Below the pieces are notes generated by a model that saw only the letters and a list, made by a program, of their open reading frames with translations, had not been told where the DNA came from and made no database searches. From Phallusia mammillata (lineage: Eukaryota), in NCBI GenBank assembly GCA_965637545.1, contig OZ281494.1, positions 9,176,001-9,240,000 of the forward strand: a stretch of DNA of 64,000 bases. Direction: 5' to 3'. Positions within the stretch are counted from its first letter, which is position 1. The number at the start of each line of letters is the position of its first letter. This document shows positions 1-48,700 of this stretch, piece by piece. A program made the position numbers and the translations under genes.

Positions 1-198
1 AGCTTGTGTAACACAACCTGTTTTTGAAACAAAGGAAAAAAAACGCGAATAATGGAACTTAAGCATGGCGGATTCGTGTCTTACGTGTCATACGGATCTA
101 CCACAGTCGAGTTAAATAAATATAAACGCATTGTCAACTTTGGTTGTTACTTATGTGTCCAATATTCTACAGATTATAATCGTCGTAAGTTTTAAACA

Positions 199-1157
199 AT
201 GGCAAATACCTGGATTTGTGCCGTGGCGATGGTTGCTCTATGCTCACGAATGTGTAGTGCTCAAGGATCATGGGATTCCTATGTATTGCAAGCTTATAAT
301 ATGGCCGATCAAAATGTCACTGCAGTAGAAATTTTTGGTTGTAATACAGGGTCTATTTGGGGTTCGTTATACTACCTGAATGATTTTGTTTCCCCTTTCA
401 GAGTTGAGGTGAGTATTTTCGTCTTATTAAAGATGTTTTTACATGAGCTTAGCTGCAGCATTAACAATATTGCATTCATTTGAACCGATGTTTGTTTTTA
501 CAATACTTGCCAAACTTAACAGAAACTGGAAGCAAAAGAGATGTGCAAACACCCAGATTCACTTACACTCAAGGTCGGTGGCACTTTTACCATCCAGAAG
601 CAAAGTACAGACAGTGTTGGAACTTTCATCTACAAAAATGAAAAAAACATATTCGCAGTGTCGATAGGACCAACTTCAGGTAAGAAGAAAAAGATATTAT
701 AAATCAGACTGTGTTTGACTTTACATAATTTTAATTGAACATAATTAACTTTTACAAAAACATAATTTCCAAGCGTTTATACTGGAACCCATGTTAAGGG
801 GCCCCGGTATAGACCCTTCAGTATTCTAGTATCTGGAAGACGACAGAATCACAGTACATAACTGTTTATGACCGAAACAGTTTTACATTTGCATGTTTTA
901 TTTTTTACCTCAAAGCACAAATGAAAAAAAAACTTTTAGACGCAAACGTTTACCTATTTTTATATATTAAAGTGGTCTTATTCTATTTTCTACTTTGCCC
1001 GCTGAAATTGAATTGCATTTAGTTTACAGAAATATAACAACTCTTTGATTTACTTTCAGCTGTTCTTGCTGGTGGCAAAGTGGGCGAAACTGTTATAGGG
1101 TTAGCTGAAAAAGGAGCTAACGTGGTTGAGGAATATCTGCAGTCTTTCGGACTGTAG
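199..1157 (+). CDS. Profilin-like protein A with N-terminal signal peptide (154 aa; exons 199-408, 523-679, 1060-1157)
   Basis: Canonical GT-AG introns (phase 0, phase 1) give an open frame: MANTWICAVAMVALCSRMCSAQG-SWDSYVLQAYNMADQNVTAVEIFGCNTGSIWGS...LTLKVGGTFTIQK...FAVSIGPTSAVLAGG...GANVVEEYLQSFGL*. It matches profilin hallmarks (SWxxYV, G..G.IW, L.xGG.F, C-terminal xxYL.S.GL/Y). The first ~22 aa are hydrophobic and end in C-S-A. TATA-like TATAAA at 121. Confidence 0.85.
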
Positions 1158-2347
1158 ACAATTTTGTGTTGGAAACAAAGAAAAGGAAATTTTAACTGTC
1201 AATTACATAATAATCAAGAGCTTTATTTGTTTATGTTCGGGATTGTTTTCTTTTTGCAAATGTCTATTTGGTTTTCATGGTGCGGAAATTTTGGTTAACG
1301 TCAATTAAACCTACTAAGTTGATCTCGGAACAAAGGCATGGCTGTTGAACGGAATTACTTTTGTAAAGTAAAAATTTACGCGGTTTGTGTTGGCAAACTG
1401 ATCAATATTAGGACAACTGATGCAAAAAGTTACGCTACCAAGGTTCATAAGGCAAAGTTTGCAGATTAAACGATAAAAGTTTTTTCTATCAAGCAAGATT
1501 ACATGATCGTAAAAATTTTCATACCCTATTTTACCTTATGCCAAACTCAAAATAAACTTTATAGTTCAAACCTAAACGCCAAAGTGTATTAAACCTTAAA
1601 TGACCAGATATTCTGTGGACACAACTGTTAAAACAGCCCAAATATTCCATTGCCACAATCTAACTAACTACCTAAAAGTGGCTGTAGGTGGCGTTTTGTT
1701 TTTGCAGCGAAGGGTTAATATTTTAAAGCAAGATCAAATTGGGCATTGGCAGTACGTAATTGCGGCAGAACAAGAAGTGGGTTACTAATGCTCCACTAGG
1801 CTATAATTTCTGCACAACCGAACAGAAGGTACAATAACGAGACGCCAAGCTTCGCGCAGCTGAGTTCGCAACTCCTTCTATATTTTAACTTCTCCTGTAA
1901 GTAATTTGTTACACCCATTTTTAAAAGTTGTACAAAACAGTTGATTGAACCCGCCAATGAAACAACAATGCCAGGCAGCAAGCTTCGAAAATAATAACAT
2001 TTACCTCCTGTCAGTTACGGTTGCTGAAGAAAATATTGATTGCTTTACCGCTTCCACGCTCATGTAGCGACAAATACAAAACCAGCAAGGTTGCCATTTT
2101 TACTGGTACCAGGCACAAATTCCAAACAAAACACTGAGTGACAAGTTAGAAATGCAGAAAATAGAAACAAAAGAAATGCAGAAAATAGAAAAGGTCTGTG
2201 ATTTTTCGCATAAATAAATCACACTCCAACTTATCTGATGTGTGTTTACAGAAAAGTTAAATAACTGCCAATGACTTGTCAACGGATGATAATTAATCAT
2301 TGAGTGTGCATTGTGGTACAGAAAAAACATCGCATAGGTTTTTTTCA

Positions 2348-2950
2348 ATGGCAAAAATGGCTCGACGATATTAATGCACGACAAACTTTCCCACCCACAT
2401 CCATCATCGATCATATTTATAAACTATACGCCGGCAACGTCCATCATCGATCAAATTTAAACTCGGTGGCACTTTTGCATTTAAATGACAAATGCAACTG
2501 ATAAGACTTTGGCAAAGAATGTTTTTAGAGTAGGCCCCAAGCTCTTTGGAAGCTTTGTTTGCGCACCAAAATCAATATAATGACCTAAAATACTTTTCGA
2601 TCAGACTTTCAGGAGAGTCATATACTCGAACATTATTTTAACCAGAGCCAAATTGTTAATCCTTTTAAATGTTTAATTAACGATGTGATGGGATTTATGC
2701 AACGCGCAAATTTTTTACACAGACTTACACGCCTGGGATGAAAAGGGTGTTTGGAACTGACAATCTCAAACTGATCGCGAACGCGAAACATCACTAGAGT
2801 AATATCTGCAACGGAAATAAACCGCTTGTGTGTAGCATGTATGGTAGGGTTGCCATTCGTCAGGATTTTCCCTGACATGTCAGGGAATTTGGTGTTTAAA
2901 TCTGCGTCAGAAGGAAATGTTAAAATGTACTTAAAAGTCAGGAATTTAAG
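2348..2950 (+). pseudogene. Decayed third copy of the signal-peptide profilin-like gene
   Basis: 2190-2350 aligns with the upstream region of gene B (6020-6215), and ATGGCAAA matches the start of gene A. 2428-2490 translates IRRQRPSSIKFKLGGTFAF (gene B exon 2: LLRQHPSSITFELGGSFTF), followed by a frameshift/stop. Most of exon 1 and the exon-2 donor are missing. An exon-3-like piece follows an AG at 2835 (ACMVG...ASEGNVKMYLKVRNL vs ...AADKGVEYLKLIGL). Confidence 0.7.
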
Positions 2951-3487
2951 AAAAAATACATATGTATACTATGAAATTAATGTACCAACGGAGAAAGTTT
3001 CTAGTAGTTAGCTACAACCGCGTCTATACCATAAAACGTAAAGAAGTAAACTGGCGGCGCGCAGGTTAACGTACCTGTTACTGTTTGGTGTGTGTGCGCG
3101 CGTAACAATACCTGTTTGTTACTAGATGTTTAACAATATGCGTTAAATACACAAATAAAAATCCGCGTCTCAAGAAAACACAGCATTCGATGCTACATGA
3201 GAACGTGGGAAATTTCATTTCCGTAACTGTGTACCTAACATGCAGGGAACTAACTAACAATTAAAGTCCAATGCGTGAGACATAAAAACATTTTTAAAGT
3301 GGCATTTTTCTTCAAATTTTAAATGGTCCTTGTGACTCCCATTTACTAACCAGAAGCCTACGCAGAAAGTAATTGACAAGGATCAGAGTATCGTATGTAA
3401 TGTTTTCTCGTGTCGCCGTCCGTGTGACTTCCGAATATTCGAATTTATTCCGGAATAGAAGTGTTTGGATCGCAAAAATGGTTAACG

Positions 3488-3853
3488 CAGCGGTTCTCAA
3501 ACTGGGGTCCGCGGTCCTTAAGGACATTTTGCGGGGATCTCGAAAAGGTGGAAGTAATTCTATATTCTTATTTGGCGTCAGTTTGTGCAACTGGATAAGT
3601 TGAAATCAAAGTGAAAGTGAAAATCAACCGTCTCCATTGTTAAACAAAAGGCTTTATTGCATCACAACTAACAAAATGCAATTGTTCGCGCACAATTGTA
3701 ATGTTTTTTGTCTTGTCTGTGATGTCAAATTTGGATCATTGTTATGCGCAATTTTGCATAACTAGCTAAAATCCTGCAATCAACTTTCGTTTTTCTGAAA
3801 TACACATTCAGACTTACGTTAACACATTTAGACTTAAAGTTTGAGAAAAACTG
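3488..3853. mobile_element. hAT-type MITE
   Basis: TIR cagcggttctcaaact / agtttgagaaaaactg (13/16); 8-bp TSD ggttaacg / ggttcacg. Confidence 0.65.
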
Positions 3854-5060
3854 GGTTCACGCAACTGAGATAAATTTTGTCAGGGATTGTGTTTCATAAA
3901 ATATGGTAACCCTAATGTATGGTGCATCACAACCTACGTGCAATAGTGGTAATTTTGATAAATACATTATTTGATACATTAGGTTTTACATAATTTGTAA
4001 AACATTATCCGCTAACTATCGCCAGAGATCTAATCTCCACATAAATAAACCATACCGTGGTGTAGGTACACCTGCCAGCGTGGCTAAATAGCACCTTTTG
4101 AAAAGAACATATTTGGACCAGATTATGGAATTGTTTGGGGATCGTATTACCCCAATGTTGGAACAAGGCCATTTTGGAGTTGATGTAAGGTAAGGTTAAT
4201 TATATGCTTCTTAATTTGGTTTAAGTTGATTCAAAGTGTTGTTCTAAATACTATCCACAAATTTTTTTTTAAAAAAACACAAACCATGTTTTAAAATAAA
4301 TCCCATGCATTGCACGACTACAGGCTCAGGAAAAACAACTAAGTTTCTTAATCGCAATGTCATTTCGAAAAAGAAGAGTGCACAATAAAATCTTGAAAAA
4401 CGCAGCGCGTTTCGGGTTGCAAAAGTTAAATTTGTTTTAAGAGTAAAGCACAGAAAAAAGTACGGCCTGTAAGTTTTAGATGCCTGCGTTTTCTGGTGAA
4501 TCAGTTTGCATATTTTCGAAGTCGTTTCTGGTGAGTTAAGTTTTACAGTGCATTGAATTAAATTACAGGTTTTCTTGTTGGGGCAGCAGGAAAATTCGTG
4601 AAACACTTAAAGACCTAAAATGATAAATTTTCCTTTGAAAGAATTTGTACACCGATATAGGCCTACCCTACATGATCCAGATTTTTTTAATTGAGAACCT
4701 TGTTTAAATGTAGTCGCAAACGTTTTGAGCAAATTAAGGCAGTTTTCTGTTTCGTTTATCATAAGTAAACGTGAAAAAGAACTAGCATATTTTGTGTGTA
4801 AGCTGTATAGAAATAACTTAATTTAAGCTATTTATTTGACACCGCTTTAAAGGTTCTCCCGCCGCATGGCTGCAGGCAGTCGGATAAAAGCGCCAATTTC
4901 AAAAACGGTCATAACATTCGAAAAACAAGATGTAAAGACCTGAAATTTGCAGGAGTACTAAATATGAAAGCAAATTATGAAACCATATCAGAAAAAATTG
5001 CAAAAGAGTAAAAAACATGTAAATTAAACGTAAATAGCTGGAAATTCTATATAAATGGAT

Positions 5061-5405
5061 GTCGCGTAACAGTGTTTTATTCTAGAAAGGTGTTGGTAGG
5101 TCGTTATGACGGTCAGCGGATCGTAGCTTTGAAGATTGCCGTCGATAAGGTCTGAAGTTTGAAGTCCAATAACTTTTGTTTGACAAATAAGTAGTTAATG
5201 AAATTTGGGATTAACACAGTTGCATACCCTATTATAATAGGTATTATTGATAATTATCAATAAATGCTGTAAATTTCATAAAAATCGAGGTCGCGTAACA
5301 GTGTTTTATTTTAGGAAGGTGTTGGTTTGTCGTCATGACAGGCAGCGGCTTGTGGCCTTAGGGAAAGCCGTCGATAAGTTCGTAAGGATCATAACTTTTG
5401 TTAGA
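5061..5405. repeat. Diverged direct repeat, two ~115-bp units ~230 bp apart
   Basis: gtcgcgtaacagtgttttatt...gccgtcgataag...ataacttttgtt occurs at 5061 and 5290; probably internal repeats of a non-autonomous DNA transposon. Confidence 0.7.
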
Positions 5406-6217
5406 TTAAGTACTTCATCAGATAGTACCTCAGATTTTTATCTCTCTCGTTTTTCAATATTGCTGCCTCGTCTTCCGTATATATGAATCGTAACAGTTTG
5501 GAGTAGAACACCACACCGTGTGGTTCGCGTTTACGTTGTAGATCGCTGTATTTCATGTCTCTATGCGTATACACAAAGCTTTATCTAGTCTCTTGCTAAA
5601 AATTTCTTATCATATAAAATCCAGTGGCGTAGTACTTTAGTTAAGGATAGACAACTAAACAAAACACAACTCACCGGCGTCTGTATCAGACTTTGGACTT
5701 CATGGATCAGACTTTAGACTTTTAATTCAAACATTTTACCATATGCAATTGTGATGACGTATTTTATTTTGTTGCAACGTTTTAAACGACTTTTCGCACA
5801 TAACTGTTTACAACTACGGTTCAGCACATAGTTGGCGTTTTCGCGTGTAGGCTACGTGTAAACATTTTTTTTCTCATCTTAATGTCGTGATCAACCCCTA
5901 TATAAGCCAAGCGTTTCTTTAACTCAAATCAGTTTTTAAAGTTAAGTTTAAAGTTTACCGTTTTACAATTTAAAGTTAAGTCTATTTGTAAAACAAGAAA
6001 AAGGCGGGTAGAGAAAAAAGTACATGATTTTCGCATCAATAAATCACTCTCAAACTCTAACGAAAGATACAGCAATTCTTCAGTGCGCAACGAAAAGCAT
6101 CATATGTGCTTACAGAAAGGTTAAATATTTAGATACGTATTGTCGGCAATTCATAACTACCGTGTGTGCATTAAGGTGCATCTGAATCATCGTATAGGTT
6201 TTTAAACAACGAAAAAT

Positions 6218-6979
6218 ATGTGGGTTAATGTCGTAACGATGATGGTCTTTTGCTCACAACTCGTAGCAGGTAGTTGGGATGCTCACGCGGAAGCTATTAT
6301 GAGATCCAACAAGAAATCTCTAATTCTAGTCCAGATATTGGGTCCTGATGGTGGAAACGTTTGGGGTTCATGGTCTCCAAGCTCGGAACCATGTGTTTTG
6401 AGACCTGATGTAAGTTTTTAGTGTGTTTGTTAATGCAGATTCAGAGTGAAATAGAGACTATGGCATACCATACCTAAAAGCATTATTGCATGAAATTTTT
6501 AAACAAAACTACGTTAATAGTGAACAAATTCACGATTTGGTTCACGATTGCAGGCACAGGAAATTTCCCTGCTACGCCAACATCCTTCAAGTATTACATT
6601 TGAACTGGGTGGCTCGTTTACATTCATAACGGACGTGGAAACAGAACAAACAGGAAGAGTAATATCTGTTTACAGCAATCCCAAATACTGGATCGCAGTA
6701 TCATTTGGAACAAACTCAGGTAAAAAGGAATATGCAGTACAGAGTTAAGAGTTTTTATAGTTTAGTATCGTCACTAAATTACGTCCTGTCATATTTGCAT
6801 GTCTCTCTGTCGAAGTGCGTTGGTTTGCACAAGGTGGACCTCATTTCTGGTTGGTTAATTCTAACACAGTATTGAATGAATTATCAGGTGTTCTAGTGGG
6901 GGTTGAACAAGCCTTTAGGAACCAAGCAGAAAGAGCAGCAGACAAGGGTGTGGAATATCTAAAATTAATTGGCTTGTAA
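6218..6979 (+). CDS. Profilin-like protein B with N-terminal signal peptide (149 aa; exons 6218-6409, 6554-6719, 6888-6979)
   Basis: Same intron phases (0, 1) as gene A. MWVNVVTMMVFCSQLVAG-SWDAHAEAIMRSNKKSLILVQILGPDGGNVWGS...ITFELGGSFTFI...WIAVSFGTNSGVLVGV...AERAADKGVEYLKLIGL*. ILGPDGGNVW closely matches the profilin (I/V)G.DG.VW motif. An alternative in-frame acceptor at 6869 would add 6 aa. AATAAA near 7151. Confidence 0.85.
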
Positions 6980-8178
6980 TTTTGCATTGATATAATTTGT
7001 ACATGGATTTTGCGTTGGTACCAGATATTGGGAGTAGTGAACTAATCCGATACGTCGTAAAAAATAAAAACTCTTGAACACTTAACTAATAAGCAAATTA
7101 TTTCCATACACACACTTAACCGGCTGCTTTGTTGTTATATGTACAAATGCAAATAAACTGTACACAGCTTACTCTAGACTCTGGATTGCTTGTATTGTTA
7201 CCTGCAGATTATACAGAGTGGTTTTCAAGCAAAAAAATGCGTGATCTTTTTGGTGACCATTTTCAAAAATCGTAAAAAGCACGGAACCTTTCAAAAATTA
7301 TAAAAGAAAACAATGTAGCCTACGACAAACGTGTCAGTAAGATAGTTTATGCTAACCACTGCACAATAATAACGATAGTCAACCCAGCACAACAACAAGT
7401 GCAGGCTATAGGCTAAGCGTTTGTGTTTTTGCACCCTTCTTTATCGTCATAGCATTAAAAAAATACATGTACCTCACTTTTGTGTTCATGCAAGAACAAA
7501 GTTTTTTTTGCTCGTTTAGTGTTTTAATGCAAGAACAATTTGGGTACTGACATCCCGTATGTCAACAACAAAACAACTGATGACATGCCAGGCCAAATTG
7601 TAAAATTCGGTGCAATAACGAAATGCCAAGTTTCCTAGAGCTAAGTTCGCAATAAATCACGCAGAATGTCATCAGCACAAGAAGCTGATTATAAACACAA
7701 TCTATTTTAAAAACAAAGCGACAAAGCTAATGCGCAGAGAGGAATTAAAGGCAGAACGATTATGCGTCTGCATCACACATGTTGGAGTGAGCCTGCTTAT
7801 TTAATGCCTTCAAACGCATTGACAGCAAAATGTTTTTACATATGTGTGCATAATTCTACAGATTGTTTATGAACATAAAGGTTATAAAAGTTGAGGGCCT
7901 TACTGCTGTTTCATATTATCAAAGTTATTATTTGGATGCTGTAAAGTGTAAACCTGTGTTGAATGCAATCGATGATTTTCAAGTTCATTGGCATCCGAAG
8001 CGCAGAGCAATTTTTGAATATTTCCTGTAAGTGATTTGTTACACCCATTAGGTGAAATTGCACAAACCAGTTGATTAAATTACCCGCCTTCCAATCGTTT
8101 ATTGTTGATAGTTGTGGGAGATGCTAAATTTATACGCACGTGATGCGTCGTCAAACTCAAGCAGTAAAACCACTAAAT

Positions 8179-8485
8179 CAGGGGTTCCCAAACTTTTTTG
8201 GTCTGTGGCCCAAATGTCTTTTTAATAGCGATTCATGGCCCACCTGTAAATTTGGGCACAAAAAATAACTCAAAAACAGGCGAAATGGTTTCTAGCAATT
8301 TGTTTTTAATGAGATACATGCTCCTGAAATTTGGCTACAAGATTCGGAATTCTTTGCAAAAAAACAAAGCGCATAATATCTACAGTATAACAAAAGAGTA
8401 GAATCTGTTCAAATGGCTCTGTGGCCCATTGAAAATGTCTTGGTGGCCTAGTACTGGGCCATGTCCCACAGTTTGGGAACCACTG
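8179..8485. mobile_element. hAT-type MITE
   Basis: TIR caggggttcccaaact / agtttgggaaccactg (15/16); 8-bp TSD cactaaat / cactaaac. Confidence 0.8.
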
Positions 8486-9761
8486 CACTAAACTAAAAAA
8501 ATGTTAGCACACTTTATATAAGCTTATAGGCAGTGTGCTGCAATACTAAACCCAGCAAAGGAGTAGCATGAAGGACAAAAACGTGTCTTGCCAATTACGT
8601 GATTCTTGCATACAGTCTCGAATAAAAACTACAGAATAAATGCGACAAACATATGCATGTTCGGCGTCATAAGCAATGTAACATCAAAGATTTTCACCTA
8701 TTTTTACCTTTCAATATTGTTTAAATGTGAATTCAGGTTGACTACCTTCGAACTACGGTCACATTTGACGATTTGACAAGCCATTATAGAACAAAATGGA
8801 AAGCACTTGGCATTGAATAACGGATCGTTGTTATCACACAGCGGTAATCAGGGTCAGGGTGTTAAAATTTTTTTCAAAGGGGAGCACAACGCGTTAAGCA
8901 GTCGGAAGGCAACGCTTTTTATTGCGATGGGCTTGCCAGATAAACAACAATTATTCCCCGTCGATCACGTTTTCGCGGTGTGACAAACACAATACCCAGT
9001 AGCCTAGACAATTTTCTGTTTTCGTGAAATTGCATTCATTCTAATCCTGGGCACTTTTTAAGCTTATTAATTTGCTCCACTCAAGACGGCATTTTTTGTA
9101 ATCCCAGAAATGTAATCTTTCCTACCTATTACATTGGCTAGCTTTATCGAACGGGGAGGCAGAACCTTGTGCATGTTAAAAAAAATATCGCATTTTTCAG
9201 AAAGTTTTGCTCATCGTGTCACACACTTTCTACCGCATAACAACTTGCCATCATGGACAATCGGTTCTTAATGAGAGCTACCAATTTTCTGCACTAAATT
9301 TGTCTTCTGTCCGTTAGTTTAAACACCAACCATGACTTAATGTTTTGTATCATTTTTTTTACAAAAATAAGAAATTTTATGACATTAAATATTACAGTAA
9401 TGTGCTAGTAAAAAGCAAACTACAAAAGTATAGTTGAAATCCATGAAAACAATTTTTCCATCCATACCTCAAACAAATATTTACTACCCACTTCAAAAAA
9501 ATGAACTTAATTTTTAACCTAATTTCTGAATATTTATCAAGGTGAAACAAAAAATGTCCAACAAGAGAGCCTTGAAACAAAGTACTTGAAGACAATCGAC
9601 CTAAAGCAATCAATTTGTTGGATAACAGTGTATAACGTCAATTGCAGTAGAAAAACGAAATAACTTGCATATAACTTGCTGGTCATTGACATAAGTTTTC
9701 CAAAGACACAACGATCTCAGTCCCAAATCCACACAACCTGTACCTAAATCACTGGTTTTGT

Positions 9762-12700
9762 TCACACAGGAAATGCAGACAGTACAGCCTCACCAACCTT
9801 GCCCCAGTTTAAACTCAAAAGTGCAGCACCTTTAAAACAAAATAAGGTTGTGTTCGGGAATCAAAATAAAAAGTGATAAATATAGCCCATGTAATCACCA
9901 TCACTCTTGGCCGATCTTGTGAAGTTACGTATTCAGCTATGCAGTACAGCCACAGACGCTACATGGGCCGACTACACCAGTTAAAATTGCTCCTCTTTGA
10001 ACTTGATGGGTTAATTTCGCAAAAAAGATAGTTACAAAATGAAAAAAGATGCAACTTAGCATAGAAGTGACGAAGCAATATAATTAATTTCTTTTTACCA
10101 AAGAAAAAAAAACGTTGCAAAGATAATGATAAAAGTGGTTGTCCATTTTAAATAACAAAAACATTTATAATGACCAAAATATTGTGAAAGATAAAAAAAA
10201 TTGTCACTTACCCAATGCAAAATATATCACAACCAAACTCCATCCAAGGTTGTATTCAAAATCTCGTTCAGCTAAAAGTGTTGGTTGACTGCTGTAAAAC
10301 CGAGCCCTTAGTGGAAGCAGCAATTCTGGCCAGCAGGTTGCGTCACCATCACATCTTGATAAATAATAAAATCAAGGTAACATACCAAACAATTGATAAT
10401 TAAGGGCGTGGAAAACAGGAAAATATTTTGCTGTAAAGTTTGCAGGAGATGTCAAACTCTTCTCACTCATTGGTAGTTGTTGTTCCAGTTACAGGAACCG
10501 AACTGAATGTGACAATACTGTACACAGCAAAGTTTTCCGTAGCACTTCCATCTGTACAAGCTCCACCTCCTCCACACTGTAGTTTCCATGTCTCTCTCAC
10601 CCAACTACAAATCAGGGGGTTAATGATCAATAGATTGTCACCTCACATTAAACACATATTGATCAGCAACTTGATGAATAATTAGCGTCTTATGTAGGGT
10701 TACTTATGCCCAATGCATTTCACTCGATGACTGTATGCAGAAAGTGTTCCTGTGGGGGACTGATTCACCCTGTACTAGATGACAGATTTAGCTTGGAGCT
10801 TTACATTTCAAAGTCACTTGTGCAATATCACAAAGTCAACGTGTGTGACGTCGTATTAGGACCATGCTGGGTTCATTTACAAAAGCAAAGTATTTGGGTA
10901 TTGTTTCGGCCCATCTCTTCCAGATAGTACTATAGAAATATTTAATTTAGCCTACTAGACGGACTGTATGTTTGTTTGAAATTAATGCGAAGCGAATGTG
11001 TGAGGTCAGACTTGTCCGCCGTCACTTCAAAACGAAAGTCATTTGGTACTCTTGTTAAAGAAAGAAAAACGTAATGTAAGTACCTGACTCGGACAGCAAC
11101 AATTTCTGTGATGGGAAATCCTTCTATGCGACCGGACAATGATGTTACAAATTCGATGTGGACTTGAGACGGAATGTTGTCACATTGACTCGGAATTGTG
11201 TTGTTGGTTATATTGGCTTGTGACAAAGTACTGTGAAAGAAAGTAGGATTTTACGCTAACAGTCTTATAGACATTTTTTATCAGCATATCATTACAACTT
11301 AAAAGCGCAGTTGACAGACAAATTGAAAAAAACGCTACGTACAAACGCGTTTATAACCAGGCACCTTCTCTCTGTTAGTCTGTAGTTACTCTGCGACCGT
11401 TTTTTCATTGGTCTGTGACTTTCCCGCGACATACAATATTTTTCATTGGTCTGTGACTTTTTCATTGGTCTGTGACTTTCCCGCGACATACAATATTTCA
11501 GTGCAATGTACAGTGTGTTTTTTAACAATAGTAAACACATGCGTTTGCAATGCCGGCAGAGGGTTGCACGCTTTATTACTTCAACATTCAATGAGTTCGT
11601 CAAAGCATGCATTTCAACAAAGTTGACAGGGCTACCGCTATATATAAAGTTAAGTATTTTAAAACATAGTCAAACACGAATCCATATAAATTTGTTACAA
11701 CGAGGGTACCAAATCAAATCTCCAAACCAAAAAATGACAATTTTCTATGCATTTTTAAAAGTTAGAAAGCAAGAGTATTGTCTAAATCTTCGTCCGCTCG
11801 TAGCGCTAGAGGACTAATATGTAATTTTGTAAACAAAGTCCGACAACCATACAGCCAATAATAACTGAAAATGATGCACACAGAAAAGTTGTTGGGTAAT
11901 CCCGTATTGACTCGTTTGCAAGCCGCACAAACAGCAGGGTAAAAAAGGCCGAGGCTTACAATTGAATAAATACGGTACCTCAGAAAAAGTCGAGAACAAA
12001 ATTTAAATCCCAAATTCTACTACAAATGTCTGCGAAACCACTATTTATTTGTACCATACTGTGCAGTTTGTGTTCAATTAAATTTTGATCAATTATTCGG
12101 CACTACAACAGTTCGCAAATAAAAACCTACTGGTAAAAAAGATGTGTTTTATCCATCCTAAGTTAAGATCAGTGGGCACATTTTTAAAGCATAAAGTTTA
12201 GCCCCTTGAAAAAAAGACACAGATAAGTTTGGATATTTCCATGTGGGTTGTATCGTCACCAGGAAATGTTTTCCCGCTAGCGTCGATGATACAACTAAAT
12301 TTGAAAAGCAAAAAATATCTTTCGAAATACAAGTCGTATATACGCAAGTTGTGAAAATTGACTTTGGAATTCCCGGTCCATTTGGAGGTGCAGCTAATGA
12401 AATGACAAACCACAGCGAAGAAAATTTCCACACAAAAAACTCGCTGACTCAGATTTGACCTTTCACCGAAAAGGTCAATTCGCAGACTTACCAGCAGAAA
12501 ATTTTAATTAGGAAATACATCACTGCTTTTTAATTTACAGAATTGGTCTCAAAATCCATTTTACATATTCACGCATATGCAAACTAATGTCTTAGCCCAT
12601 TCTTGGTTGCTTCCTTTTCTACGAAGCATACCTGTTGGTTATATAAAGCAAGCCTTTACACCGTATGGCCAACAAAATGTTGGAACGCGTTAGTAAATGT

Positions 12701-15700
12701 TTTTTTTTTCAGCTGGTAAACAAAGGTTTTGTTCATAACTTTTTTTAAGTACCCTCCATTTCTAAAAAAAACAGTATTGGATTTTTTAGGGATTCGAAAC
12801 TCTATGCTGTTAATTTCCACGTAAAGCCCCAAACAAGCAATCAGGCTACCAACAAAATAAAACTTACATGTTAACATTTGATGTCCAGTCTGCGGAGTCA
12901 AAAGAAGTCGTGTTGGGATTTCCAAATCGTGCAACCTGCACAAGTGCACCTGAAGGTATCAAGACCCGTTGGTTATTTTCCACCAATGAACGTAGAGCAG
13001 CGCAATCGCCAAACTCAGCTTTCGACAAACGAAGCAAGCATCCCGTCGACATATCTTGGCCGAATAAGGGCGCTGTTGTACCACTTTGCGCACAAAGACC
13101 ACTGGAATCTGCCAAAATGATAAGGACTTTTTACGATATTCCGTATGGAGCATTATGTTGTTGAGTACGCCTTCCATATATCCTGTCAGCATATTTTTTT
13201 CTGTTTTCTGTGTATAAGTGTTACATACGATGCTGGACTAAAATCAATATTTAGTAAACCTTCTCACATTCTCTCATAATCAATAAAGCAAAAATGTTTC
13301 GCAAGTCACAATAAAGAACATGGCGGATCTATTTTTTTAAAGCCGTAGCCTGGTAATAATTAAACAACATTGAAGAGTGCACCACATGTCGTAGAATTAC
13401 TGTTGTTTCACAGCGCCACAGCAAGTACATTTTGCAAAAAAATCCTTGTTCACAATTTCGCTTCTACTAAATGTTGCACTGCATTTACATTACGCATTCT
13501 TGACATATATTTCACAAAGCTCAAATTTGATTTACAATTTAAGGATGGTATCCTTTTTATTTGGGACCTTTATACAGTTTTTGACAATGTACAAACGTTT
13601 AGACAAGCAACACTACATACATTATTATGTCCATTACTATTTCAAATTGCTATAATTTTTTATGTTATATTTGTTTTTCTTCTTATGGCGAGGAATGAAT
13701 AGTTCGAAAATGGGCAAAGGGGGGAATGTAACAAAAAAGGTTGGGAACCACTGACTTAAACTAAAAAGAATCAATCAGCTCGATGCTTGGTGGATACAGA
13801 CTATAATGTACGGCATGTCTATTAATTTAAGTTCATAAAAGCATTAGGTCTTTTTCGTCAAGATTTTAAAACATGCACATTTCACCTAAACAGCTTCATC
13901 GGTATTTTATTCAAATTTAACGTTTGGACAAGAGTAGAAATATTTTCGAAAGAGCCGCGAAATAAATCATATGACTTCAGACAATGTTAGCAACAAATTT
14001 CATTAAGGACAACTTTCTCCTATTGCATGGTGTTTTCCACAATCCGTGGCTAAAAATCGTGTCAAAACGTTGTGGTGCAACTCGGATAGCTGTAAATTTC
14101 TCCTCACATTTCACTACAACATTGAATTTCCGTGAAAAAACTTAGTTACAGTGTAGCAAATTTTTGTTTCGTAAATATTTTGGTCAAAATAATCTTCACA
14201 GCTCCCGGAACGTGAAGCGAGATTTTGAAGCTGTTACGGCGGTCTCCATCGAAAATGGCCAACGGTGCGATTTTCGAAGGTTAGTTTTGTCCGCTGGAAC
14301 GTGGGAATATTTTATAGAATTTGGTCAATGAGTTTAATTAACAACGCCAACCTAATGTGGAATTTCATATTTTTTGACATTGGATTAAAATTCCTTTTGA
14401 ATTCTGGAAAAGGCGCTTTTTCAGGTTGTGTTGCAATAAGTTACGTAAAATGAACTTGTTTGAAGCGATAACGCGAAACATTTTACAACTAAACAGAAAT
14501 TCAAAATATTTTCACAGATAAGTCTTCATATAAAAGTTGCAATTTAGGTAAAGCTTTTACGATTACAACAGTGCAGAGACCTAAAATCTCGCAGCTCAAA
14601 AAATTACGTTAGCAGTATCAGGTTTTTTTTTTAAGGTTTGGTTTGGGTGACCGCTAAGTAGTTTTAAGAGACCGCAAGTGTTTCATTTAAATACCAAAAA
14701 ATAGCCATATTTGCTTTTGGGAAACCGCTGGAGAAATTTACACCTAAAAAAACACTGAGCGGCATATGTGCAAGATAAATCATACTACACCTTGCACATC
14801 TACTCATATAATCGGTTATAATACAAAATCCCAACCCAAGGTTAGGCATGTGCAACCGACAATTTTCTGCGAACACGCTGACCGGGGGCAGCAGTTTTTG
14901 ACGTCATCGCCATTAAACCCAATGATTTAATAGGTTATGTTAAAGTGTGTAGTTTGCGGCTTGCACCTCGCACACTCCTATTCGCCGAATTTCAACCACA
15001 AATTTATACTTCCAGCGCAATTTGAGCAAAACAGGGGTTAGTGTCAACCTTTTCGCGTAGATTTCCACCTTGCGGCTAGAATGTTTCGTCACCAACACCA
15101 CTCACGTGACACATGACGGAACAAAAGTCGCCAATAATCTAAAAAAGGCCGATGCAAATAACCAGGAAACTACAGCTATTTTTTCTTAGAAATTCTGCCT
15201 AAATTGTCGAAATAATGCTATGATTAGTCACAAACTGCGGCCTAAAAATGGATTTTTTTATGAACAACAAATCATAGCACAACAAATGCTAAATACAACA
15301 AATCAGTTAAGCTAATACTGTTCGGCGATTTTTAATTTTGACATTGTAATTGCTAACATCACAACAATGTTTGTTAAGTAATTTTGACAGTGCCGAGCTG
15401 TATTTAGCACAACCTAGATATTAGATGCGATAATTACGTTGGTGTATGGCCCAGAGCATTGGGGGGCATGTAAATTATCCATAAATAGTAATCCTAAATA
15501 TAGTTACATTTTAACGTAATATTTTTGACGTTCTACTGACACGTGTAAAACTTTTTCAAAAAACTTTCGTTGTTTGTTCTGTCTATCTTTGAAACATACA
15601 TTCGTTTTTTTAATATGTTTTGTGAGAAGGTAGGTGCAGTTAGCCATGTAAATTTTCGAACCCATTTACAGACTATTTTAAAATATATAAGTAAACGCTT

Positions 15701-39700: not shown

Positions 39701-42700
39701 TTCCTGCAATTTTAATCTGAGTCGTGTCGTAGGTTGGGGTGAACCCAAAATTATACAGGCGTGCCCCGATGCAGGGTGCAATTGGGTTGCGTGGTAACAG
39801 AATGACGTCTGCATTGCGTTTTTGTCGAATTTACTTCTTTAGTTTATCGCAATTTTGTGGCGTTGAATAGGGTCAAAAAGGTACAACGTGGGTAAAAACT
39901 GTACATGTAAGATGTTTGACACACATAGGGAGGACAATTACCCCAATTTCGTACAATCGATTACCAATTATTACAGCCTTACGGGTCTACATAGTTGGAT
40001 TAGAGGGGTTTGCGTAAAATATAAGTCAATCACATCGGTGCAATGTGCTGCGTTGTAGTATTAACAAACGAGACAGAACAAACTTTCCACAGGATCTCGA
40101 GTCAGTTTTTCAAATTTAATGACCAACATATTTGACCAATGTTATATCGTACAGCACCAAAAGGACAACTTTACATGAATTTATGCGATTGTGTGACCTT
40201 CCGTTACACAATGTTTAAGTTAAAAGCAGAGTTCCACAAGAAAGAGCCATTTTCTTATAACTAGGTTAAACGTTTTTGATCCCGTTTCAAGACCGCCTGT
40301 CATCTCCAGTCAAATTATTGACCGAAAGATCTGGTGTCGCGAAACGTCGTCGCGGCTTGGCGTAGTGTTTACGGCTTATAGCTGCGGTGACATACAGGAG
40401 CATGACAAATTGCGGTCAATGCGGCGAAAACGTGCAGCGACCGCCGGATTACCAACAGACGGAAATAGACAAGTCCATAATATTTATTGATGGCGTCGCT
40501 ACAGCCGGGCCTAACTGAAGCCTATGCAATGAACGGAGCTTGTAATGCTTGAATGGCAAGTTAAAGTTTAATGCAGCTTCAATGTGAAACCTGAAAAGGG
40601 CAATAGCGTAATAGCTGTTGTGAGTTTGGCCATGGGCGCATGCGTTTGTTTTGTACATGAGCACACGTGGGCATAGGCTCGGCTTAGGCGAGTTTGCGCA
40701 CAAACAAAACGCAGCACAATGCCGATTTTGCGCAATAAACGCGTATGAGGCTGCTGCGCCTGCCGGGCTGTTGGGCGTTTCTGAAATGACGAATGTATCC
40801 AACACATAAGGAGCCAATTACACGAAGCCTGTCTTGTGGGCGTAAAGCGTTTATACGTCTTCGCTTTATAAGGAACGTAGAAAGCTACACAGTGAAATGT
40901 CTAACTTCTTTAAAGGAAGAGAATCTTATATATGGCCCGAAATTGCTGTATAAGCGCTACTATACAGATTCTACATATACAGCTTGCTTCAAACAACCAA
41001 GCAATGTTTTGGGGGTATACCTACAATTCAGTGGATTTCAACGAAATAAGCAAAGTCACAGTACCACCTGTAAATCAGTCAAACAAACATAATGCCGTCA
41101 ATCACAATTTGCCAACGCCAGCAAACAACTAAAGAGTCTATTCAGTTGGTATGAAGTAATAGCGCTGCTGAAACCAAACGTTTTCTATAAATGCCGTCTC
41201 ATAGTAAATGAATTTAACTTTGAAATCAAACGAACCCAAGAATGCTTTCCTGCATTTATCACCAACCCTTCTATGTTTGCACAACCTCCACGACGCCATC
41301 TAACGGCCGTCAAATAACGATTTAATACGAGACATTTCCTCGATAATAGCAAACACCAAACAAAAACATTGACTGGAAAGAACAAATACCTGGTTGCCAT
41401 ATCTTAAATCCTTGCGTGGTGTCAACGATTGCATTAGGTACAGTTTGGTTTCCGCTTATTACTGGTAAACCAACGTCATAGCCAGGATTGCCCGAACGTT
41501 GAACTGTGGGTGGGTTGATGAAGCTTGATCGTACAGTGAACGATTGAGACAAAATGTTGTCGGGTGGTGTTCCTAATACAATGGAAATGGTGATGTAGGT
41601 TTTCTAGTGTTTAACCACTGACTTGCAGATTTTATAACTGATTTAAAACGCATTTTGTCAGAAATAATAGCAGTAAAGTATCTAAACATGACATTTTTAA
41701 GAAGTAGCATAGTACAAAGGTTATGTTTGCAGATCGCTATGTTGCAACATCAAAAGTTTTAAATGCATTTAAAGCCAAATGACACCGGTTAAAAATCTCT
41801 GCTCCACCCAAATCAGCTCAGTGTTCTCAGAAGAGCGTTTGCAATCATTTAGGACTAAATCAAACCATTTAAAACAGAATATATTCTGCTGTATACAGCA
41901 ACAAGGAAAATGTGGTCACATATCTTGTTATTCGTCCAACCATTTTGGTAAAATGTTTTCGCAATATTAACAACTTTTAACACCAAATAAACCGTCTCTG
42001 GGTTTTGTTTCTATTACCTTCCCTTATGATCGTTTTGAAATCGCTAAGCTGTACACAAAAAGATTTTCAAAAACGTCTAAATTTATTTTATGCTTTGAGC
42101 TTTACAGCACCAAGAATGAATTTCTTTGCAGAAATAACTTACCCTCCGCCGGGAGCGTTCCAGTCAACGGGACATCGGCAAGGATGACGTCAACATCAAC
42201 GTTTGTCACACGATTTCCTTCCCACGTGATAAAATACGTCACACTGACCACCGCATTGTTGCAAGTCGCACCAGCCACTGTTGGCGAAACTACGTTTGTT
42301 GCTGGACCGATCGTGCCTAAACAATGCACGCAAATTACTAAAGTGTTTTAATACTATGCCTGCTTTCCATGTTGACTTGCACCTGTGAAGAACAAGAGTA
42401 ACAAAATTTTTACGTTGTATACAATGTATAGTTTTTTAAACGAATATAAAACGAGGCACAAATGTGTATCTTTTACCACTAATATCAAGTGATCATTGTT
42501 TGTTTGTTTGTTTTTTGTCTTAAAATTTCAAGCACCAACAACCGACGGTTTTGAAAATATTCTAGTGTTCTCCATAATTATACTTCCAGGTCTTGAAGAA
42601 AAACATAAATATAAAACAACACCTTCATGCACAGCATTTACACAACAATAGGCAGGCCCTTAACGCAAGGCTTAAAGACGCGCGTGGATTTGCTTTAGAC

Positions 42701-45700
42701 TTCTGAAGAAATTCAAAGTTGGCGGCGTTGATTGCAATCGGCGGGACAAACGTTGAAACTCGAGAGGCGCGATTTTGATCAATCACCGCGCATTCCTGAT
42801 ACGTACACGTGGAACGCTTGGGCCGTTTGTAAACGTTGCAAACCGAATCCGTTGTCATATTTTATTTGGACGCTCTTGAGTTTAGCGAGGATTTTATGCT
42901 GGAGCGCAGCTTGTCCACTACTTGTACGTATTTACTGCACAGTTACATTTACGAACAGACATTTTTCAAGGCTCTTTTGCACGAGTTTTACTGCATCCGA
43001 GAAGTTTTACTGATTGTTGGAGAGGCTTATTGCGAGAGTTTTATCAAAAAGCCGCAATTTCAGATACCAACCGGCAAATTTTACTGACCTGTTTAAGGTA
43101 CTGCATACCTTGTTAACTTAACGGTAAGTCAGAGTGACCGAAGTTGCATTATTTTCTTAAAAACGTTACAGACATATGTGCTTGAATCATGATTTAGAAA
43201 TATTTATTAAATTTACTTTTTGTGAAAAATCAAAATTGCTGTACGACAAACCAACCGCATAACTCTGCTAACATTCTTTCATTGTCCAGAAAAACCTAAA
43301 TCATGAAAAAATGATTTACCAAACCAAGATGTTTTTTATATCAATGTTATTCTTAAACGTGACTTATTAGACAACCAATTTTATTTGTTTAGAAAATGGC
43401 GATAGAGTCGCGTTTCCGTACCCGGGGAGGCTACAGTCACGTGACCCCCTACAATCGACAGAATCGCGGGGTGTTGGCCCGAAAACCCCCTGCACCCCCC
43501 ACTACTCGGGCCCGCAGCAGTGGTGCCGCAGCTTCATACGCTTTCGTCGCTTCGCAGCGAACGTCTTTGGGAACTGGTGGAGCTGTGACGTCAATGGGTC
43601 GCGGTCACATGGTGGCGCCATGTAGCCAGCAACAACCAGCGATGAAGGTCAACAAAACGTTGTACTGAAATTTTTGACAAAAATTCTGATGCAAATCATT
43701 TTTGTAGGTTTGTTTTTTCGTACAAATCCCCATCACAAACTGCAGAGATTCGTTTTTCCATTATGCAACAGTCAACATTTCATTATTTAAAATATTTTTG
43801 CCTATTTCAGACTTTACAGCAATGCGGAACAGGTGGGGTTCCATACAATTCTGACACAAACATGGCTTTCGTCGCAATGCCGATGACACTTCCGCCGCCG
43901 ATTTGCGCCCAAACCAGACTTCCCCAGTTCGACCGCTTGTATGAAGAGTTTGAAAAAATGAAGGTAAGGCCAAACCTGGATTTCCAGTAAAATTGCAATT
44001 GTTGAATACACAGATTTAGAAGACGTTGCGCTCTGGATTCCAAGCTTGTGTAGAATTTACTTAAGCTTTCCAATAACTTTTTGCAACTGCCCCTAGTTTA
44101 CAATCTTTCACTGGTATTTAGTAGGGCGGAGCTTTAAACCATTAACACAAGCACAGCATGAAAGAGTTAATTTCAATCCTCAATAATATTTTTTTTTCTT
44201 CCAGCGAGGTGGGTTTGTGATCCAGCCCCAACCACAACCCCAGCTTCCACCCCCACCAAGCACCCTTTCAATGGAACTTCAGGTACCTCCACCCCCAACT
44301 CAGCAATCGGTCCAGCGCATTCCAAGTCCCACACCCTCCGCTGGCTCTTGTGCATCATCTAGCGGTGGAGATCAGCCCGAGCAAGGAGTGTTCGCGACAG
44401 CCATGAAGCTCTTTATGCACTCCTATATGCCAACGGCCTGCTTTGATTGCGCCACTCCAGTAGACGATTGGGGAAGAGAAGCACAAGCGCTGCTCGCTGA
44501 AGTGATGGCGCCCGGCCAGGTCGACGAAAGGTATGAACCAACGTAGTTTAAAGGTCTTCGGAGTGTATGGTTTCAGCTAACTGGTGCTTATGAACTATTT
44601 CCAAAGGACTGTTTCTGCTAAAATCAAATTTTACTTGTGGCCCGTTTTCATGTACGACCATACAGTTCGAAACAAACTGACAGTTTGTCATTTAGATCCA
44701 CAAAGAGCACCTGGCCACACAGCTCCAGTAGCCGCAACACGTCATCAGACTATGACGTCAGTATCAGCGGGTCCAGTAGCCCCGATAAAACGTGTGGTAT
44801 TGGGGTCGGTCTAGGGCCCGTCTGCAACCCCATGTGGGTGAGCGGCACGCAGCAGCAACATAAGATGGACATCCATCGACACATACTAGAGATAAAGCCG
44901 TCACCTTATCCCGGGGGAAGTCCTCTCTCACTTCCGTCGGTTATAAGCAACCACAGCAGTGATAACGACGCTGATGACGAGTCCGTTGCGTCATCCACAA
45001 GGTATGGTTTGAAATTGAATGTTAACAAAATTTCGATGGTGGTAGTGTCGGTATAGTTGGGGCTACCACATTTTGACCCACAGGCGGAATGCAAGCCGAC
45101 GATTTAGACTAACGATGAAGATAGGTTATGTCATTGCAGTAAATGCTTTGACTGCGACGATTTAGGGTCATTAATCCATGACTGCTGGAAATTGCTACAC
45201 AGGACATATGTATTTTTATTTAATGTTTTTCACTCTGAAATTTCTATTTTGTCATTCTGTCATTTTACCTATTTCTCTAGGTTCGGTATGTCACATAGAA
45301 AATTCACCATCATAAGTTGGCTTTACAGATAGAAGAGAAAGAGTGACATGAAGTTTTGGCTTGTTCGCGTTAAGATTAAGAATAACTCATTAATCTATAT
45401 TTATGTTGTTCTATAGCAGCCCCGCTTCGATCGTTCCGAGGGCACCAGGCAACACAACAGTGCGCCGTCCGTCTTACAAGAAGAAACACGACTCTGCTCG
45501 AATTCGCTTGTCGATGGATTCTGGTTACCAGTCATCGTCCACAGACGGTGGCAGCTCTTGTCACGGTGGGTGCATGTGATACGTAAACGCACATTAGCCA
45601 ATCAGCATCTTTCACGTGACCATGTTTTAAAGGCAGCCAGGCGCCAGCGGGTGGTTTAGACTCGGACGGTTTCTCCTCAGACATTGGATCCACTTGTTCG

Positions 45701-48700
45701 TCTCGTCCTTCGTCGCCAACGCGAGATACAGGGTTTTTATCGCCCACCGACCTCCCACCTTATTTGAACGCCCTGCTTGAAGCACCCTGGATCCGAAACG
45801 CCTCGTCTAATGCACAAAGCCGTACGGCTGTACAACGCGACGCTCCTATACCTACTGTAGCTTCTGTGGGCGAGAATACTTCCATACCCATACAGTCACA
45901 GCCGTCGTCAGGCGCCGAGGGTAGCACCTACACGTACCACAAGCACAAAGATTGGATAACTGACGAGATTCTAGAGATGATTGTGGTACGAGATCGCCTC
46001 TACAAGCGCATGAAGAAGCACCCGGCGCCTGACATTGTCGACATGTACAAAAAGGTAACTGCTATTCTTGTTGTGTTTATCATGTGTGCCTGTTCTGGCA
46101 ATATAGGTACAGAAGTACAAAATGTATACGGTAGGTAAGGTTGAAATAAATGTAGTTTAAATATTAGATCCCAGTTCTAGAATGTAGATAGGTTGGCACA
46201 TATTGTAACAGAAAGTGGCATGCTTTTGTTTTTTATTAAACGATGGCAAAAATTAGCTAAATGGTTTAACAAAAAGATTTAGAATCATTGTTTTGAACAG
46301 TTGCCTATTTCAATGGACAAATTCGTCAAAATGTTGTTACGTCATGAAATCTACGTCATCTTTTCCAACACGAAGTCAAAAAGTAACCATGTTATTGCAG
46401 GTGCGGAACATGGTGGTTGGGATGACGCGCAACGCAAAAAGGGCTCACGAAAAAAAGTTGGAGGATGAAGCAGCACGATCAAGAATGTCAGGGTACCACA
46501 ATATGGGACGGTCGAGACCAAGACGTTCGTCATCAAGTTACCACAGACCAAGGTAGTAGTGGTACGTCATCGCCAGTTACGTCATTTTACCGCCAGGACA
46601 AACAATGTGAGATATTATTTCTATCTTGTGTATTTTAGTCGCGTTCCGTTTTGTTTTAATTTTTTCGTTTTTTCTCCGCATTTGTGTTTGTTATTTTTTG
46701 TTGCGTTGCGTTTTCAAGAGTTTTATGTGAAGCTGAAATAAATGTGCATGCATGATTTGATCACACATGAATTAGTTACCTGTTGAACCAGTAAAATTGA
46801 AGAGACTGACACCACTGCTGCTTGCAGCGCCAGTGTTGGTTTTCACATAGTTGGTGGTAGAGGTGTCTTTTCTGTAGGTGACCTGAAATTCAAACCTTAG
46901 TAAACAAACATGCTTAGATTTGAAATGCTATGATCTTTGGTCAATCTATGGTATGAAACCAAACATAGTGGGGAGTGCACAACGGTGCATATGTTTGGTA
47001 CAGAATAATTACTGAAGCTAAAGAAGTGTTAAGAGTTGCTACTGTTAAAACTGTTGTTTTAAGTTAATACACACAAACCGGGCTCCAAATAAAGACTTAA
47101 TTACATTGACATTGGCATTTTCTCCTCCAGGTGTAGACTTGATGCTTGTGGTGTTTGTAACATAATTATTAAAATCCAAGATAGAACCCTCAGCACAGTT
47201 CAAAGTTGTGACCGTTACATCACAATATGCAAAGGAATCATTTTGAAAAGGAACCAAGGCATTTTGCAAGCACTGGCCTGACAAGGATGTCTGAAAAACA
47301 AACAAATGGTCACTAAATTGTTAGTATTGTAATGAAAAAACGGTAGTTGTATACATTTTTTTGCAGTCATTGTTTGGCCTCACTAAATGCTTAACTCTGA
47401 ATAACAGATCTTAGGGGTCTTTCATTTACCAGTTTAACAAAGAGGTAAATTTTGCAGTAAAAACAAGACAAAGGCATTGGCAACAATGTTAAGAAATGAC
47501 GATACATTACCTGAGGAAGAGTAAGATAGCCAAAGATTATAGTGCCATTGAGCAATATTTCAATAATAATAGGATCTCCGTTGCGGTATGGTGTAGTTTG
47601 CATTGGCTCTTGAACTGTATTACTGACACTTGGGAATACAAAGTCGGTAGCACTGGCAAGTAATGCACTGGAAATGAACACAAACATAAATTTATCTTTA
47701 CAACAGAATGTAAGCTCATAGAACCTTTTTTCAAATTACTACCATGCAAGTATTTTAAAGTTTAAGATATCAAAACACATTTTTATGAAATCAAAAGAGA
47801 AAGTTTCTCTTTACTTCCCCTTTTCTGCTTTACAACATTTGCCTTTACCCTGAGCAGTGTTTTTTTAAGGTGTTTTGGGGACCGAAACGGCCCCCAAATT
47901 TCTCCAGCGGTTTCCCAAAATTTGGACTTTGGATTTTTTGGTATTTAAATGAAACACTTGCGGTCTCTTAAAACTACTTAGCGGTCACCCAAACCAAACC
48001 TTAAAAAAAAACCTGACCCTGAGCGTGTGTGTCAAAGACAATTTGCTTACTCTGTTTCTTGTGTTGTTAGTACACTTTGCCTTCCTGTAACATTAGCAAA
48101 GAATAGTCCCAGATCTGGAGAGTTAAGGCGCTGTATGCATGTAAATTGATGGTAGTCGGGTACATCAAACTGCTGGGTTGTGCACAATTGTGGATCATCG
48201 GTAGTGAAATTTCCACCAAACATGCCAGGAATGCATTGAAAAGTGCTCTGTTCTTCTGGTGTACACATCTGTTTAAAATAATTATTTCATTGATTTGTAT
48301 TAGTTGACCAAATTAATACTAAAACCTAAAAGATATTTTAATCAGATGAAATATAAAAAACACACAGTCAAATTTAGCTATATGTAACAATGATAGTGGC
48401 ACAAATTCCTTTCCAATGCATGTGCTAAGTTACATGCCAAAAATGGAAAACTGGTTAAAATTTTACAAAAAATGTTTGCATGTTCAAGTCATTTATCATC
48501 CATAATGCTTACCACATCACAACAACAGTCCGTGTCACAAAGATCCACATCCAAGTCACATTGACATGGGGCAATGTTCTGATATGCAGGATTGGGAAAC
48601 AAGGAAACTGCAACAATAACAATAGAAAAGTGTAAGTTTCACGAACATGCAAATTAACAGTGTAACTAAGCCATTTTTTGTCAACTTTTTGTCATGCATA

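Follow-up and report, generated by a model that had tools for sequence, protein, structure and literature searches.

Nested within the 64,000-nucleotide stretch of the Phallusia mammillata genome analysed here (contig OZ281494.1, positions 9,176,001 to 9,240,000 of the forward strand; 'the window' below, with coordinates counted from its first letter) is a seven-exon gene on the plus strand, 43396-46556, which ends in a short helical hairpin. We consider it quite probable that this is a genuine single-copy host gene of ascidians, lying opposite a gene of the Tectonic family, and that its tail is a hairpin of the fs(1)K10 C-terminal type (K10_C; Pfam PF28493, fs1K10_C) homologous to the linker found in open reading frame 2 (ORF2) of long interspersed nuclear elements (LINEs), between the endonuclease and the reverse transcriptase (RT), and acquired by an old capture. 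Sequence comparisons argue strongly both for the status of host gene and for the homology to LINEs, while it is likely that the hairpin passed from LINE to host and did so only once.

The C-terminal module, the one well-folded part of the protein, is basic, with a net charge of about +7, and spans about 60 residues (amino acids (aa) 499-557) that are encoded in two pieces:

45935-46054, plus strand: first part of the K10_C or LINE-linker-like domain, aa 497-536, running from YHKHKDWIT through helix 1 and the loop into the beginning of helix 2
46401-46463, plus strand: remaining part of the domain, in which helix 2 is completed, aa 537-557, VRNMVVGMTRNAKRAHEKKLE

The intron between them is in phase 0 and falls between K536 and V537, as a first, sequence-only reading of the window had already placed it. 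Searches were run with single exons and, for the tail as a joined piece, with the deposited protein of this gene (P0003). Searched against the animal's own genome, the last 40 residues of exon 6 find 10 other places (E 0.005 to 3.6), at least nine of which share the pattern (H/K)K(P)WIT..IL.SI.TKNK(M/L)YK; in the long ones an endonuclease domain (Exo_endo_phos) precedes the motif and an RT domain (RVT_1) follows it. One LINE subfamily begins AYHKHKPWIT where the gene has YHKHKDWIT, such that eight of nine residues are identical over the lead-in. With a motif profile built from three species (A1), every one of the 29 non-self matches in the 240-Mb genome is a LINE ORF2 frame (best E 1.1e-5); where the frame is full-length, 70-80 aa separate the motif from Exo_endo_phos before it and about 200 aa from RVT_1 after it. 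The gene itself scores 111 bits in this search and the next match, a true LINE, 33.5 bits, which marks the gene as single copy. Conversely, a hidden Markov model (HMM) made only from LINE linkers scores 24.8-35.4 bits on the tails of the three species. Among 1.84 billion proteins, a library-wide profile search also reaches two LINE fragments below E 0.001, P0028 (E 1.2e-4), in which a weak endonuclease-RT match precedes the motif, and P0030 (E 8e-4), for which an ORF with RVT_1 follows next on the contig.

Profile-to-profile comparison makes the same connection. Aligned with hhalign, 11 host domains (A2) and seven LINE linkers (A3) match with 96.9% probability (E 1.6e-10, score 52.8) over 59 columns without gaps; the exon-6 part scores 47.0 by itself, and the exon-7 part adds about 6 within the full alignment. 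One could argue that two amphipathic helices rich in lysine and arginine have come to look alike by chance or convergence, as the domain is short and helical, its exon-7 half is not significant alone, and a structural search returns only generic or designed hairpins (see below). We regard this as very improbable given that the likeness extends into the non-helical lead-in YHKHK(P)WIT, that the matches in the animal's own genome all fall at the same ORF2 position, and that the hhalign score stands about 20 standard deviations (SD) above column shuffles (200 shuffles of either alignment, mean 9.3-9.4, SD 2.1, maximum 19.1; reversed profile 7.6). The two sides also differ in composition, the gene being rich in R/D/E/V/M and the LINE linker in N/K/T, and the likeness is therefore not a product of composition bias. 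As far as sequence can tell, homology to the LINE linker is established for the first approximately 41 columns, and the remaining columns, those of the exon-7 part, appear collinear with it but weakly similar. The relationship to the ORF2 region between endonuclease and RT that the sequence-only reading had proposed from a consensus is thus borne out by the genome matches, hhalign, the library search and the ESM Atlas look-alikes described next; within the last approximately 110 aa, which it had singled out for comparison, the similarity of the domain stands by hhalign and the library profile, except that the exon-7 part does not reach significance when taken alone.

Predicted structures are consistent with this relationship. 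AlphaFold2 places the helices of the host domain at 12-30 and 34-63 (predicted local distance difference test, pLDDT, 92) and those of the LINE linker at 12-29 and 34-65, followed by a short third helix (pLDDT 86), so that, once aligned, the helices of gene and linker almost coincide in the models. In the ESM Atlas, the look-alikes of residues 498-560 are headed by an arthropod PF28493 cluster. Several LINE endonuclease/RT clusters, of mollusc, chordate and cnidarian origin, are also among them, and in two of these LINE clusters 13-19% of the members have PF28493. A phmmer search of a Phallusia LINE ORF2 against the sequences of the Protein Data Bank (PDB) found no solved structure covering the linker: only the RT aligned, with R2 proteins, and L1 ORF2p was not among the matches.

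The gene and the LINE linker therefore share the lead-in (K/H)K(P)WIT, near-identical predicted helix positions and a gapless 59-column alignment. They differ in that the linker continues with NxNNPxKTWK, absent in the gene, and in that the gene, unlike ORF2, has no endonuclease or RT, is single copy, and possesses introns and orthologues. A Pfam search of every exon (E<=10) found no endonuclease or RT similarity, and tblastn of five LINE ORF2 frames against all 64 kb matched only 45935-46051, with no other LINE remnant in the window; the earlier remark that no such motif lies nearby was accurate. As a side observation on the LINEs themselves, the ORF upstream of ORF2 in a Phallusia element (L002:2639-3115, minus strand, G000:C3) matches Baculo_FP_2nd (PF25298, E 9e-17), an unusual type of ORF1 and a possible clue to the clade of these LINEs.

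The same hairpin links the gene to fs(1)K10, a classical axis-patterning gene of the fly whose biochemistry is not understood. Precomputed PF28493 matches are present on two orthologues of the Phallusia protein, P0015 and the Styela protein P0004 (the latter marked weak), and on P0020-P0023, and a profile built only from ascidians matches these four proteins in the same library, with E-values of 6e-8 to 1.5e-7. By BLASTP, P0003 and P0023 are 50% identical (E 7e-18), in the domain only. What the ascidian proteins and the other members have in common is a domain of about 60 residues, with 50% identity, at or near the C-terminus of a low-complexity protein. They differ in that the ascidian proteins are rich in serine and proline (S/P-rich) with conserved blocks of their own, while the other members are rich in asparagine and glutamine (N/Q-rich) with WPxLK-like tails, and in that the ascidian gene has an intron within the domain. 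The PF28493-bearing N/Q-rich proteins are 493-700 aa long; in P0020, P0023 and P0026 the C-terminus is WPALK, WPSLR or FPELK and the N-terminus carries SYTDD..F..K.K.FWG, both of which are absent in the ascidian proteins. Judged from these alignments, the family assignment would hold for the domain and not for the whole gene. In the fly, K10 is an oocyte-nuclear, chromatin-associated protein that binds the heterogeneous nuclear ribonucleoprotein (hnRNP) Squid in vitro and is needed to anchor gurken transcripts (PMC2980492), and a butterfly study listed fs(1)K10 as not found in chordate relatives (PMC3654919). A connection between K10 and LINEs is implicit in databases, as the fs1K10_C model of Pfam 38.1 already matches some LINE ORF2 clusters, but we did not find it stated in the literature; searches on K10 with non-LTR (non-long-terminal-repeat) elements or domestication, and on fs1K10, PF28493 and LOC100183225, likewise returned nothing relevant.

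That the hairpin belongs to a real, spliced gene is supported by the open frame, a deposited protein and assembled transcripts. As the sequence-only reading had it, there is a spliced gene of 587 aa here: seven coding exons and six introns, all GT..AG, yield an open frame of 587 codons, and the spliced translation is identical letter for letter to a deposited protein (P0003/CAB3262780.1, 'uncharacterized protein LOC100183225 [Phallusia mammillata]', 587 aa). The features of the transcription unit, with the evidence for each, are:

43093-43123, plus strand: 3' end of a non-coding 5' exon whose start lies upstream of 43200 (contig loose ends)
43393-43647, plus strand: exon with the start codon (ATG 43396), aa 1-84 (spliced frame, contigs)
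43811-43963, plus strand: coding exon 2, aa 85-135, ending in the conserved LPxF.xLYxxFExMK (frame, contigs, alignment)
44205-44530, plus strand: coding exon 3, aa 136-243, with the conserved FxxAMKxFMxSYxPT...DWxxEAxxL (frame, contigs, alignment)
44696-45001, plus strand: coding exon 4, aa 244-345, with the conserved IxxHxxxIxPSPYPxGxP and SDNDADDE (frame, contigs, alignment)
45417-45565, plus strand: coding exon 5, aa 346-395, with the basic patch RRPSYKKK followed by the invariant DSGYxSS (frame, contigs, alignment)
45633-46054, plus strand: coding exon 6, aa 396-536, with an alternative acceptor at 45637 (frame, contigs)
46401-46556, plus strand: last coding exon (7), with the stop codon TAG at 46554-46556 (frame, contigs)
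46737-46742, plus strand: polyadenylation signal AATAAA (sequence, contig ends)

Evidence for transcription comes from assembled contigs of sequencing runs guessed to be RNA, which inform on the presence of transcripts and on their junctions and not on levels or strand. One contig of about 2250 nucleotides (nt) from each of four runs, belonging to four studies, contains all six predicted junctions exactly, and the six junctions proposed from the sequence are thereby seen in transcripts. These contigs lack the introns, whereas two other runs contain 96-100% of the stretch; in the 14 runs guessed to be RNA (four studies), 49-53% of its sampled words are found. All four contigs further join a non-coding 5' exon to the first coding exon (43123 to 43393, with donor GT at 43124-43125 and acceptor AG at 43391-43392), and their loose ends before 43392 match letters 43093-43122. 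The leader of the contigs is 253-294 nt long and has an in-frame TAA 11 codons 5' of the ATG; one upstream ATG was seen within an assumed leader of 285 nt. At the other end, two of the four contigs stop at 46758 and 46773, 16-31 nt past the AATAAA, and the other two continue to 46782 and 46806. The AATAAA lies 37 nt from the neighbouring minus-strand exon at 46780-46882, close to the approximately 40 bp estimated beforehand.

The acceptor of intron 5 comes in two versions 4 nt apart (aaagGCAG|CC): 45633 is used in runs X1 and X8 and keeps the frame, while 45637, used in X2 and X4, shifts it, so that translation ends at codon 403 and the product lacks the tail. This stop lies well before the last junction, and a message of the 45637 form would be expected to be degraded. 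Minor variation was seen elsewhere in the transcripts, including T>C differences between the assembly and the contigs at 43506 (one run) and 46671 (three runs), which are probably polymorphisms, and a low-depth contig of 179 nt in run X1 (44536-44714) that lies across intron 3 and extends into the following exon, as unspliced pre-mRNA or intron retention.

Conservation among ascidians decides against a recent origin of the gene. A word search with exon 6 retrieves two ORFs from other samples, with contigs collinear with exons 2-7 and 3-7, and these two further species have the intron at the same position in the motif. Full-length orthologues from Styela clava, Clavelina lepadiformis, Ciona intestinalis and others came from the library search and from another word search. 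Many genomic ORFs also stop immediately after YKK(V), which is where they would end if they had this intron too. Overall identity among five ascidian proteins is 40-49%, yet 44 columns are invariant over the final 59 residues of the domain. Over the 62 codons of the domain in three species, the proportion of synonymous differences (pS) is 0.92-1.05, and thus saturated, against a proportion of nonsynonymous differences (pN) of 0.07-0.10; as the synonymous rate (dS) is saturated there is no finite ratio of nonsynonymous to synonymous rates (dN/dS), and the contrast indicates purifying selection, such that the neutral evolution which was to be looked for is not borne out. Introns often hold transposon debris and half of the contigs use a frame-destroying acceptor before the motif, which might suggest a recent LINE remnant in the Tectonic intron that has been exonised, or merely modelled as coding, with no host function. 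We give this next to no credence, and in fact take it as refuted by the conservation data, provided that the orthologues are not contaminants of a single sample: the window has no endonuclease or RT remnant, the tail is single copy in the genome, orthologues occur in all three ascidian orders sampled with the 44 invariant domain columns, and the in-motif intron is conserved alongside a saturated pS and a pN of about 0.08. The argument that a split motif speaks against a recent transposable element was thus a sound one, the intron being kept in two other species.

Since orthologues occur across the sampled ascidian orders, the capture predates the split of those orders, and it is, by these sequence comparisons, ancient and family-wide rather than local to this Tectonic intron. 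The features by which a domesticated transposon-derived gene is usually recognized appear to be present in the sequence, namely homology to a LINE without the mobility domains, a conserved position (in Styela, not in Ciona), selection and splicing. A different history within the same common descent would be a transfer from host to LINE, or separate captures on the ascidian and the arthropod-type sides. In its favour, only the domain aligns between the ascidian and the N/Q-rich PF28493 proteins, the latter lack the intron, and some LINE fragments (P0030, with RDKLYKRLK...APTDII) are nearer to the host domain than are the LINEs of Phallusia itself. However, the host domains of the two groups are 48-50% identical to one another, compared with about 25% between host and LINE profiles, and they share the derived features ILEMI, RDxLYxxMKKxP and YKKxRNxVVxxTRxAKR; moreover, several LINE subfamilies of Phallusia have the linker motif, as do LINE clusters of molluscs, cnidarians and chordates, which fits an old feature of LINEs. 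We therefore think such a history unlikely, and prefer an old capture of the LINE hairpin by a host gene.

Several points weigh against the old-capture reading and temper how far it can be taken. The direction from LINE to host is drawn from general knowledge of how widely the linker motif is spread, not from a tree, and captures may have been independent in the ascidian and N/Q-rich groups. The Phallusia protein P0003 would enter the PF28493 family by way of the precomputed matches of its relatives, of which the Styela match is weak; outside the 60-residue domain it has no alignment to the PF28493-bearing N/Q-rich proteins, and full-length orthology with fs(1)K10 was not recovered. Neither the LINE HMM nor hhalign finds the exon-7 part of the domain significant by itself against Phallusia LINEs, and exon 7 alone retrieves only itself from the animal's own genome. 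As for structure, a helical hairpin is a simple fold and Atlas template-modelling (TM) scores mean little at this domain length, and Foldseek of the hairpin model against the PDB returned generic or designed hairpins only (best E 0.59), with no region of L1 ORF2p or R2 among them. The frameshifting acceptor is used in half of the assembled transcripts (two of four contigs), and what we propose below for the function of the gene is suggested by analogy only.

The gene that hosts this nested unit was traced with a Tectonic paralogue from another contig of the same genome (L047; PF07773, E 3e-28), which on tblastn matches the window at 47636-47514 and 41567-41418, in both places on the minus strand. 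Because these Tectonic matches lie on the minus strand on both sides, the nested gene fills an intron of a Tectonic-family gene, roughly 42330-46779; at the level of the family, the placement within a Tectonic intron made by the sequence-only reading is upheld by the paralogue and PF07773. The host features are:

41418-41567, minus strand: host exon with the Tectonic motif QRSGNPGY (tblastn with the paralogue, E 1.4e-5, 44% identity)
42105-42329, minus strand: open frame with the next host exon (PF07773 E 0.05, 14.5 bits, sub-threshold)
46780-46882, minus strand: host-gene exon with canonical AG and GT (sequence)

PF07773 searched against the animal's own genome missed the separate exons of the host gene and returned only the paralogue on the other contig. 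This paralogue (L047:391-2106; G000:C8:14695890-14697605) is an uninterrupted frame of 572 aa with DUF1619_N and TCTN_DUF1619 and is possibly an intronless copy, whereas the Tectonic gene of the window consists of many small exons. A further weak match to the paralogue (its residues 367-434, E 0.016) lies on the minus strand at 13094-12885, 28 kb beyond the other host exons, and could be an outlying exon of this host gene or else belong to another Tectonic-like gene. In Styela clava (OZ123513.1, L049), the orthologue (10001-12817, plus strand) lies opposite a Tectonic gene (1-15510, minus strand), a nesting as in Phallusia. In Ciona (L048), the orthologue lies not within a Tectonic gene but beside a homeodomain gene and a GTP_EFTU gene.

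The body of the protein that precedes the hairpin is of a different character. It was expected to be mostly disordered, and both the composition of the 587-aa protein (S 14%, P 10%, A and G about 8% each) and the ESM Atlas model of the whole protein (mean pLDDT 0.43) fit such a prediction. Short blocks conserved in five ascidians punctuate it, namely LPxFxxLYxxFExMK, FxxAMKxFMxSYxPT..DWxxEA, IxxHxxxIxPSPYPxGxP, SDNDADDE, a basic patch with DSGYxSS, and LLEAPW. At aa 366-386, RRPSYKKK is followed by DSGYQSS, which is invariant in the five ascidians and is also present in L013 and L014. The RRPSYKKK patch may serve as a nuclear import signal, and DSGYxSS has the form of a DSGxxS phosphodegron, which it may be, although we offer this only as an idea.

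We hypothesize the following course of events. An ancestral animal would have captured a piece of LINE ORF2, from which the endonuclease and RT would then have been lost while an intron entered the domain; the domain has since presumably been held under strong purifying selection. The present protein would combine a disordered body bearing regulatory motifs, possibly including the nuclear import patch and the DSGxxS-type phosphodegron, with a hairpin that, by analogy with fs(1)K10, may dock it on a protein of a ribonucleoprotein (RNP) particle or on nucleic acid, making it a nuclear RNP or chromatin adaptor. The choice between acceptors 4 nt apart would decide whether the hairpin is made at all, giving either the full protein or a truncated message. 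A bolder extension is that the fs(1)K10-type domain of insects and sea squirts alike goes back to one ancient domestication of the LINE hairpin and still grips an RNP partner (an hnRNP or RNA), as it would have done in the retrotransposon, with K10-family proteins acting as host regulators of RNA localization or anchoring, or even of germ-line LINE RNPs; we hold this to be a speculative and rather doubtful proposition.

A known parallel is mammalian L1TD1, a host gene derived from L1 ORF1. As in that case, a module of a retrotransposon protein would have been kept by the host under selection while the functions of mobility were lost; the two differ in that the module here comes from ORF2 rather than ORF1, as a small hairpin between domains, and in that the capture appears far older. 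To our knowledge, host genes made from parts of LINE ORF2 are very few, and none is known with the hairpin between endonuclease and RT. If the proposed origin is true, it would provide a handle on the function of this ORF2 region, for which phmmer against the PDB found no solved structure in this LINE type. It would also extend the fs(1)K10 family to chordate relatives, and for fs(1)K10 itself it would supply an evolutionary origin together with a hypothesis on the conserved domain that can be put to the test.

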